A stretch of DNA of 64,000 bases. Source: Cercozoa sp. M6MM (Eukaryota > Protista > Endomyxa: Ascetosporea). Shown here piece after piece: positions 18,163 to 21,189 of the stretch; position 1 is the first letter of the stretch; each line of letters starts with the position of its first letter. The stretch lies in assembly GCA_040357565.1 (NCBI GenBank), contig JBDODJ010000033.1, one strand, 5' to 3'. The notes beneath the pieces were generated by a model, which was not told the DNA's origin, made no database searches, and was given only the letters and a program-made list of their open reading frames with translations. Made by a program: the position numbers and the translations under genes.

Positions 18163-19030
18163 TCACCGCGCGTACTTCAGTAGGTACTTGACGGCTTTAT
18201 CAATGTTGGTTCCATTCTTGGCCGACAGAGGGACCACCATCCACGCGTTTTCGCTGATGTAGTCGAGGTTCAGTGCACGGATGAGCTCGTCCTCAGGAAC
18301 ACACGTCGGTAGGTCAATCTCTGGGCGCAATGTGTATTTGTAACAGTCACAAAGCAGCAATTTTATGAACAATGGTACTGTTCGCAAGCACGAGCAATGG
18401 CATTCCAGCCAGTTCTCTGTCATCAAGAAGCTTGTGCAACTCGTGTCTGCAGATATATGAAGTGTGCGAGACAGCCGTTGCAAGTGAGTTGATACCTCGC
18501 ATCGTCTAATCTTTCGACATCAGCAGCGTCGACCAGGAAAATGATGACATCACAGCCTCTAGTGTATCTGGGCCATTCCGACCTGTACTGGCGCTGACCA
18601 CCAATGTCCCACACTTTGAACTGCACGCCTTCTTTCTGCACCCAAACTGATGGTCAAAGGAGCACGCAGTTACAAAGTGCGCGCGTGTACCTTCATGATC
18701 CGGACGTTTAATCCAACTGTTGGCGGCTCTTCTATGTCGTTAGGACCAAACGCCATCTGGTTACAGAACGTAGACTTGCCAGCTGTCAACATGCACAGTA
18801 AGTACAGGAACAAAAAAACAACTTATGTCTGTGGATTGTACCGTTCTCCAGACCAACGAGACAGACTTCGATGTGTTTTTCGAAAAACAGCGACATCAAC
18901 TGCAAAACACAAAGGCATCAAGCATAAGATAGTCTTTCAAGGCTACGCGGTTCCCTGCTAAAGTTCTACGACCGGCAGAAGAATAATACTACTCGTATAA
19001 AATACACACCTTACTAATCAGGCCGCCCAT
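18163..19030 (-). CDS. ARF-family small GTPase, Arl8-related (probably Arl18)
   Basis: MGGLISK|LMSLFFEKHIEVCLVGLENAGKST (G1), PTVGLN (G2), KVWDIGGQRQYRSEWPRYTRGCD (G3), LVLANKID (G4), LSAKNG (G5). N-terminal MG myristoylation site. Confidence 0.88.
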
Positions 19031-19364: not shown

Positions 19365-20180
19365 ATGGCCTCGCGTGTTGTGCGCGCCGCCCAGCGTGCG
19401 CTGTTCTCGATGACGCCTGCAGTGCAGCGCCAGGCTGTGCTGCGGGTGCCTCGTGTGGCGCTCAACTCGCGTTTTGCCTCCATCGGTGCGTCTGACGCCA
19501 TCTCTGCTGATTGGGAGGCCCGTCTTGCTCGCCCCGCCAAGGTTAATTTCCATATTTGTGCCTCGCCCCGATGCGTGCTCAAGTTTTGTTGTTTGTTGGC
19601 AGGATGCGCTCAACGTTGACACGGCCGGTATCAAGTCGCGCACCATCATCAACAAGCACAAGATGCAGGCACTCGTGCGCTGGTTGAGCAACAAGGTGCG
19701 TCGCGTTATTTATATATATATATATATATATGTATATACACATCTATGTGTTGTGTGTATGTGTATGTGTATGTGTGTGTATGTGTATGTGTGTGTGTGT
19801 GTGTGTATGTGTGTGTGCCGCGGTTTGGTGCAGGTCTCAGTGGCGCAGCAGCACGGTCTCCTTCCGGTGGGCCAGGCGCCTTCAATTGCCGTTCATGTCA
19901 ACGATGACATCACGGCCGATGACGTGAGCTTTGCGCTCTCCAAGCTGCCATACGATTACGAGGTGAGGAAATCCATCCTTCTCCTGCAGAGCTGTCATGC
20001 TTGCTTATTTGGCTTGAACAGGTCCTTGTGGGTGACGAAGAGGTCGCTTCGGCAAAGACGGACATCTGCGTCAACTTTGACACGCCGGCTTTTGACGAAA
20101 TTACCGCCAATGAGGTTATGGCCAAGCGTGCTGACCAAATCGGCAGCGAAGAGCACAAGGTGCACACGCTCTGAATAAAA

Positions 20181-20213
<33 letters not shown>

Positions 20214-21189
20214 TTCTCAGTTTTTGATGTTGACAGGGCATCATGCTTTCGCTATTCGAGAGCGGTTCAATCGTCTCTTTCATGCGCGAGAAGATCGAGA
20301 AGGTGCTTGCTGTTCACGTGACGCGAGCCGTTGTCTTTTGTACACTTCCCATGTTGTGAACAGGGCGATGAGAAAACAAAGGAAGCCGTCGCTCAGACGC
20401 TCAGCACGCTCGGTCTCGAGGTACCGCTTCTCTTATGTGTGTGTCTGTGTGTGTTTGTGTGTGTATTTTTGGTGTATGTCGCGCAGGACGACCTGTCGAG
20501 CATCGACCACGCCGCTGCTATTCGCGCCGAAGCTGCTAGACTCACGCGTGCCGAGGTGTGTTGTACTCCCTCGGCTGTTCACTCGGCTGTTTATGCCTAC
20601 TTTGCCCCGCAGGTGTTTGAGCGCCTGCGTGAGCTCGACTTCGGTCCACTCAACGCGCGCGGTGACATGCGCCACCCGACTGTCCCGCCGACGGTAAAAA
20701 CTGATTCTACAAGTGCATATGTCCCCTTACTTCTCTGGCCCTGGCTTATGGCTTCGCGTGTCGACAGCGCGAGGAGATGAAAAACTCCATGGAAGCATTG
20801 ATCGATCACTTCAAGTACTACAGTGAGGGTATCCATGTGCCGCCTGGCACTACTTACGCCGCCGTTGAGGCGCCCAAGGTACCTTTCCTCAGTGTGCTTT
20901 TTTTTTTGACTGGGTGCTAATGTACTGATGCACACGTGTGCCAGGGCGAGTTTGGCGTGATGATGAACGTGCACCCGGAGCAGCCAACGCGACCGTACCG
21001 ATGCAAGATCCGTGCTCCCGGTTTCTTCCACTTGGCCGCACTCAAGGATATCGCTCGTGGCACGATGCTTGCCGATTTCGTTGGTACTGCCGGTGCATAG
21101 GCCAAAATGATTGCACGCTCGGATGTTTCTCGCTCTGTGCAGTTCTGATCGGTACGTGCGATCTTGTGTTCGGTGAGGTCGATCGCTAA
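19365..21189 (+). CDS. Mitochondrion-targeted protein carrying only the C-terminal ~110-120 aa of complex I 49-kDa subunit (Nad7/NDUFS2); 11 exons, ~368 aa
   Basis: Arg/Ala-rich, acid-free presequence [16 protein letters not shown]...NSRFAS. Ten GT-AG introns splice in frame. The last exons give [46 protein letters not shown]...[18 protein letters not shown]...[21 protein letters not shown], the diagnostic NDUFS2 C-terminus. Confidence 0.9.

Follow-up and report, generated by a model that had tools for sequence, protein, structure and literature searches.

A nuclear gene for the C-terminal third of Nad7/NDUFS2 in the amoeba Lemnamoeba sinaloensis: a candidate split complex I core subunit

The MHM6MM_001918 gene and its surroundings

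The window analysed here is a stretch of 64,000 nucleotides (C33:34734-98733) from the draft genome of M6MM, an amphizoic marine amoeba of the Apofilosa (Rhizaria) that was formally named Lemnamoeba sinaloensis in October 2026 (PMC13746701). The M6MM genome has been reported as 23.67 Mb in 2244 scaffolds with 52.8% GC (PMC11069148), and the draft searched in this work comprises 23.6 Mb in 2235 contigs. On the plus strand of the window, positions 19365-21189 hold the gene MHM6MM_001918, which was rebuilt from the raw sequence as 11 exons with a coding sequence of 1107 nt, giving a protein of 368 amino acids whose sole stop codon is the terminal one. All ten introns are of the GT..AG type, introns 1-9 lying in phase 0 and intron 10 in phase 1, and an in-frame TGA is found 33 codons 5' of the ATG. 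The intact 11-exon frame of about 368 residues with GT-AG introns throughout, as given in the preliminary description of this DNA, was thus recovered from the sequence. A local script comparison found the rebuilt translation to be identical, letter for letter, to NCBI record MES1909117.1 (P0001), entitled 'MAG: hypothetical protein MHM6MM_001918 [Cercozoa sp. M6MM]', a record that was also retrieved at 100% identity with exon 10 as the query and is the single such record in the database. The features of the gene are as follows.

19365-19541, 19603-19695, 19834-19962 and 20022-20159, plus strand: exons 1 to 4, from frame and splice sites
20237-20302, 20364-20420, 20487-20555 and 20613-20693, plus strand: exons 5 to 8, from frame and splice sites
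20768-20878, 20945-21083 and 21143-21189, plus strand: exons 9 to 11, from frame and splice sites
19365-19484, plus strand: residues 1-40, putative mitochondrial-type presequence, judged by composition only
19485-20519, plus strand: residues 41-231, acidic orphan domain (remainder of exon 1, exons 2-6 and first half of exon 7)
20520-21189, plus strand: residues 232-368, C-terminal third of Nad7/NDUFS2/NuoD (second half of exon 7 and exons 8-11)
20670, plus strand: start of the profile-supported Nad7 core at residue 263/264 (PF00346, TIGR01962)
19664-20104, plus strand: cover by a spliced contig of 244 nt from an independent run (end of exon 2, exon 3, start of exon 4)
19701-19823: (TA)n/(GT)n microsatellite filling intron 2
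20172-20221 and 20428-20472: GT-rich runs in introns 4 and 6

Exons 1-9 measure 177, 93, 129, 138, 66, 57, 69, 81 and 111 nt, each a multiple of three, and the accompanying bias towards phase 0, seen in nine of the ten introns, is unusual. AC:GT repeats have been reported at contig ends by the genome paper (PMC13746701), and the repeats in introns 2, 4 and 6 each interrupt the Logan contigs of the source run.

The gene is flanked by ordinary nuclear genes for an Arf-family GTPase, an M24 peptidase and a WD40 protein. The Arf/Arl-family GTPase gene (18163-19030, minus strand) stands head to head with MHM6MM_001918, its product beginning MGGLISKV... from an ATG at 19030. With start codons at 19030 and 19365, about 330 bp apart, the pair may be driven from one bidirectional promoter. 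Elsewhere in the draft, an isolated stretch of 234 nt (C11:9785-10018) matches positions 1229-1476 of eukaryotic SSU rRNA at 63 bits and is separate from the rDNA unit on C314.

Extent of Nad7 homology and the sequence in front of it

Nad7/NDUFS2 is the 49-kDa quinone-site subunit of complex I, which shapes the pocket for quinone as well as the surroundings of cluster N2 and ranks among the most conserved respiratory proteins. In MHM6MM_001918, exons 9 and 10 each match PF00346 when searched singly (together positions 176-256 of 271, E ~2e-9 each), and with the whole protein as the query residues 263-368 align to positions 168-271 of 271 in the same profile with an E value of 1.8e-33. TIGR01962 gives nearly the same limits, residues 264-368 corresponding to profile positions 284-386 of 386. 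The whole-protein scores of 119.3 bits on TIGR01962 and 115 on NF004739 fall below the respective cut-offs of 459.35 (equivalog) and 360. Pairwise methods extend the match further upstream: BLASTP against a full-length eukaryotic NDUFS2 (P0152) aligns residues 232-368 to 347-478 at 56% identity with an E value of 2e-47, and phmmer against PDB NDUFS2 chains (E ~1e-36) places residues 231-368 on positions 262-394 of the 394-residue plant Nad7. The Nad7 piece thus comprises the last 105-137 amino acids of the protein, depending on whether homology is taken to start at residue 231/232 (BLASTP, phmmer) or 263/264 (profiles), and its exact start, at residue 232 or 264, is uncertain. The homology had initially been assigned to exons 8-11; its identification as the C-terminal piece of the subunit stands, and its start is moved into exon 7 by BLASTP and phmmer. 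As this boundary falls within exon 7, away from any intron or microsatellite, it cannot have been created by an assembly join.

The C-terminal piece carries the EMKxSME, EAPKGEFG and VFGEVDR segments, together with a conserved 12-residue segment ahead of VFGEVDR, and the last ten residues of the protein are intact. Two candidate extensions of the homology were set aside. A MAFFT alignment pairing an 11-residue stretch of the protein with the FDxPxGxxGD motif needs a deletion of about 40 residues and was judged less parsimonious than the colinear BLASTP alignment, and a BLASTP extension to residue 160 with another protein (P0192) finds no support from the Nad7 profile.

Upstream of residue 231, no Pfam or PDB match was obtained, and the regions of the quinone-site loop, GLLHRGTEK and RLDY, as well as the four-helix bundle, are missing. 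When residues 1-231 were scored against an HMM of Nad7/NuoD built from 107 full-length proteins they reached -2.8 bits, compared with a mean of -2.3 and a maximum of 2.6 for the 133 reported shuffles, so that the possibility named at the outset, that exons 2-7 are simply divergent NDUFS2, is contradicted by a score no different from that of shuffled sequence. Residues 1-40 contain seven Arg/Lys and no Asp/Glu, have a pI of 12 and precede the first acidic residue at position 44; by this composition they look like a putative matrix presequence. Residues 41-231 are acidic (pI 4.8) and without a hydrophobic span. A region-limited search of residues 41-231 against 5.8 billion proteins returned only the protein itself, no paralogue was found in the draft genome, and a scan of JGI metagenomes gave ordinary NuoD/Nad7 C-termini only and no relative of the orphan domain. 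The sole Pfam signal in this domain is a match of residues 63-92 (19612-19695 and 19834-19839) to DUF3467, which at 12-15 bits (E 0.03-0.15) remains below the cut-off of 25 and is probably due to chance.

Structure-based approaches to the orphan domain were also tried and discarded. AlphaFold2 run without an alignment gave a mean pLDDT of 38.9, too poor to be used for the fold, and an ESM Atlas model (pLDDT 0.53) had structural neighbours at TM 0.37-0.45, which is chance level. With Atlas features for residues 45-231, the nearest entries are Complex1_49kDa fragments at 0.80, a value that shuffled proteins reach in a third of cases.

Protein and metagenome searches gave no orthologue of the same architecture, an orphan domain followed by the C-terminal third of Nad7, in other organisms. 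Several library proteins that are Nad7-like in their C-termini only and have unrelated N-termini (nine from ENA and one, named subunit D, from JGI) were considered and rejected, being unnamed singletons on contigs of 1.1-1.7 kb that provide no evidence for other split forms.

Across the 107 full-length proteins, 55 columns show conservation of at least 98%, and the C-terminal piece keeps 51 of these; two of the four changed columns lie in the ambiguously aligned start and two in a loop that reads VSDGSN in most proteins and VHPEQPT here. Its GC content of 0.59 and GC3 of 0.68 are the same as those of the rest of the gene, compared with 30.2% GC in the mitogenome of L. sinaloensis (PMC13746701), and four introns lie in it or just before it. 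The columns retained, the nuclear GC and GC3 and the introns together point to long nuclear residence of the C-terminal piece under purifying selection. The same piece diverges more than any other sequence in its alignment, with a mean identity of 65% against 80% among the others. In the tree it occupies a very long branch outside a 98%-supported bacterial clade, and given this branch length the tree is at most tentative evidence against a bacterial origin. A pseudogene or NUMT had been argued against from the conservation and the intact, intron-rich frame, an argument that is strengthened by the ten spliceosomal introns, the 51 of 55 columns and a GC content of 59% as against 30%.

Annotation in both genome papers was performed with funannotate using transcriptome reads (PMC11069148, PMC13746701). 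A contig of 244 nt from an independent run of a different study joins exons 2, 3 and 4 exactly, with introns 2 and 3 removed, in blocks of 19664-19693, 19832-19960 and 20020-20104, the joint between the last two skipping 59 nt with GT..AG ends; being spliced, it represents an RNA-derived molecule. The joining of exons in transcripts, which the preliminary description had raised for exons 1-7 and 8-11, is in this way documented for exons 2-3-4, the cover of the contig stopping before the exon 7/8 junction. The contig, at a depth of 2.2, shows one difference from the window, a T>C at 19863 in exon 3, indicating that the independent run derives from the same species or a near-identical strain.

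The remainder of Nad7 and the mitochondrial genome

The N-terminal and central motifs of Nad7, initially reported as absent from the protein and the window, are likewise absent from the whole 23.6 Mb draft on searching. Queries with PF00346, TIGR01962 and a eukaryotic NDUFS2 recovered neither an N-terminal nor a full-length Nad7 from the draft, and each of these three whole-draft searches matches only exons 9-10 of MHM6MM_001918. A full-length nad7 elsewhere in the nuclear genome, which would have made the present gene a derived paralogue, is accordingly not seen in this draft, which is incomplete and without mtDNA. The draft lacks about 12% of the genome (23.7 Mb as against 27 Mb) and is fragmented at GT repeats, and exon-wise searches of the kind used here miss some exons of the known genes NDUFS7 and NDUFV1. 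Because cox1 and nad2/4/5 were not found in the draft either, the mitogenome has been removed from it or was not assembled. Nuclear genes for NDUFS7, NDUFV1 and Nad9 were found, the first two of which indicate that complex I is present.

The nuclear nad9/NDUFS3 (C1028:1-1790) is seen from profile position 76 on. Its contig begins within a lengthy (GT)n intron and carries a further one downstream, and the 5' part was not found in the draft. The gene fits the published move of nad9 to the nucleus and exemplifies how the draft breaks at microsatellites.

The mitogenome of L. sinaloensis measures 48,549 bp and encodes 11 protein genes, lacking nad9, atp8 and nad4L; the accompanying search for nuclear copies was limited to genes missing from the mtDNA, and targeted copies were reported of nad9, rps12 and rps4 (PMC13746701). 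In the text of that paper, nad7 is neither discussed, nor flagged as fragmented, nor listed among the transferred genes (PMC13746701). Since the nuclear piece is an easy BLASTP match and nad7 is nonetheless absent from the list of nuclear copies, a mitochondrial nad7 can be inferred; probably nad7 was annotated in the mtDNA of L. sinaloensis and the nuclear piece was overlooked. Full-length mitochondrial nad7 is present in relatives, namely the paradinids (1,209 bp) and Retaria, where nad7 is used as a phylogenetic marker, and any fission would therefore be specific to the lineage of L. sinaloensis.

A proposed two-piece Nad7 among known split subunits

An intact, intron-rich gene that encodes only the last third of Nad7 suggests that this subunit is probably assembled from the products of two genes. 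The most economical reading, held here with moderate confidence, is a mito-nuclear split of Nad7, as full amelioration, gained introns and retained invariant residues are not what one would expect of a redundant fragment. In its fuller form, which is favoured only a little above even, Nad7 would be a two-compartment protein composed of a mitochondrially encoded N-terminal two-thirds and an imported C-terminal third that bears the 190-residue orphan domain at the point of fission. Under this scheme, the 3' third of nad7 would have been copied from the mitochondrion to the nucleus, where it landed behind, or acquired, exons for a matrix-targeting presequence and an acidic domain of about 190 residues, and would then have gained spliceosomal introns and a nuclear base composition. 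The product would be imported and its presequence removed, after which residues ~232-368 may join an N-terminal Nad7 fragment of ~260-290 residues and make its fold whole; the gene for this truncated partner most likely remains in the mitogenome of 48.5 kb. The C-terminal strands and the terminal ...VFGEVDR segment, which in solved structures of complex I lies beside cluster N2 and the quinone cavity, would come from the imported piece. The orphan domain would remain attached where the fission occurred, being either an appendage peculiar to this lineage or a help in bringing the two fragments together.

It is also conceivable, if rather unlikely, that a full-length mitochondrial Nad7 has been retained and that the nuclear gene arose when a 3' fragment was captured and became joined to some unrelated mitochondrial protein; such a partial duplicate might represent a transitional stage of transfer with both copies usable, or might have taken on a different or accessory role. 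The full-length mitochondrial nad7 of close relatives would fit this, as would the silence of the mitogenome paper on any nad7 anomaly (PMC13746701), the restriction of the architecture to L. sinaloensis, and the long branch of a C-terminal piece more divergent than all the sequences compared. However, a redundant fragment is not expected to preserve 51 of 55 columns and the exact C-terminal motif, nor to undergo full amelioration from ~30% to 59% GC along with the gain of introns. An isolated C-terminal third of NDUFS2, moreover, has no known function, which likewise counts against a partial duplicate.

Should both halves be nuclear, as in SdhB, the N-terminal two-thirds would have to lie in the ~12% of the genome that the draft lacks. 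A draft fragmented at GT repeats, from which part of nuclear nad9 is missing, leaves some room for this, but none of the three whole-assembly searches found an N-terminal Nad7, and the nuclear search by the authors of the mitogenome yielded nad9, rps12 and rps4 only, implying that nad7 resides in the mtDNA; this arrangement is considered very unlikely. A shade less probable again is a non-functional or artefactual gene: it might be a pseudogene or NUMT, its model might have been joined wrongly, or exons 2-7 might encode a highly diverged N-terminus of NDUFS2. The poor AlphaFold2 and ESM models of the N-terminal domain and the Complex1_49kDa fragments among the nearest Atlas clusters, the latter at a chance-level score of 0.80, would be compatible with it. 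Against these stand the intact 11-exon frame with canonical splice sites, nuclear composition and conserved invariant residues, the position of the homology boundary inside exon 7 rather than at an intron or repeat, the spliced contig over exons 2-4, and the profile score of residues 1-231, which equals that of shuffles.

No published split or truncated nad7 was found in the literature searched, and a 2017 review of piecewise transfer, which covers cox2, rpl2, cox1, sdhB and the ciliate nad1 and nad2, does not include nad7 in its table (PMC5664110). The initial statement that no Nad7 split was known beforehand accordingly agrees with both the literature search and that table. If the mito-nuclear split proves true, Nad7/NDUFS2 would be seen divided for the first time, the break falling within a single fold beside the catalytic site, and a lineage-specific module would have been added to the Q-module. 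Piecewise gene transfer would then be tolerated even by the catalytic Q-module, and the question of why some genes and gene parts are retained in mtDNA would gain an example that is hydrophilic and on the matrix side. For structural biology the split would provide a naturally occurring NDUFS2 in two chains and with an extra domain, and it would correct the gene-content picture of the October 2026 mitogenome, in which the nuclear gene went unreported.

Compared with canonical Nad7/NDUFS2/NuoD, the protein described here has the last third aligned to the end, at 56-66% identity to animal, fungal and alphaproteobacterial proteins, whereas the N-terminal two-thirds are missing and replaced by unrelated sequence. 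Within the NuoD superfamily, the VhuA/VhuU [NiFeSe] hydrogenase of Methanococcus voltae has its extreme C-terminal segment encoded as a separate gene. Unlike MHM6MM_001918, VhuU is an archaeal, operon-encoded segment of ~25 residues and involves no inter-genome transfer.

Closer in logic are the eudicot rpl2 and the cox2a/cox2b of Sphaeropleales, in which the 5' part is encoded in mtDNA and the hydrophilic 3' part in the nucleus with a presequence or extension (PMC5664110). The same 5'-mitochondrial and 3'-nuclear division is proposed for MHM6MM_001918, but those cases concern different subunits and complexes, and the present gene, so far seen as the nuclear piece, carries an extension of ~190 residues without known relatives. 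The cox1-c gene, which encodes a C-terminal piece of Cox1 in the nucleus, and the SdhB-n/SdhB-c of Euglenozoa likewise illustrate core subunits of the respiratory chain that are put together from two products once their gene has undergone fission (PMC5664110); however, cox1-c encodes a short tail and both halves of sdhB are nuclear, while the break proposed here lies inside a single compact fold rather than between domains. Cox2 and SdhB, the precedents originally cited for a two-piece subunit, are both found in that review, but the original account had missed the precedent within complex I itself. This is provided by nad11, which has undergone fission in diatoms and dinotoms and whose molybdopterin-binding C-terminal domain is nuclear in Ectocarpus (PMC3423374). 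As proposed for Nad7, a complex I core subunit was transferred piecewise, with its C-terminal part moving to the nucleus, but the break in nad11 separates two recognised domains, of which the one relocated can be dispensed with for catalysis, in contrast to the quinone/N2 module concerned here. Piecewise transfer itself is therefore already known, and what would be unusual in L. sinaloensis is that a single fold has been cut at the catalytic module and has received a large orphan domain.
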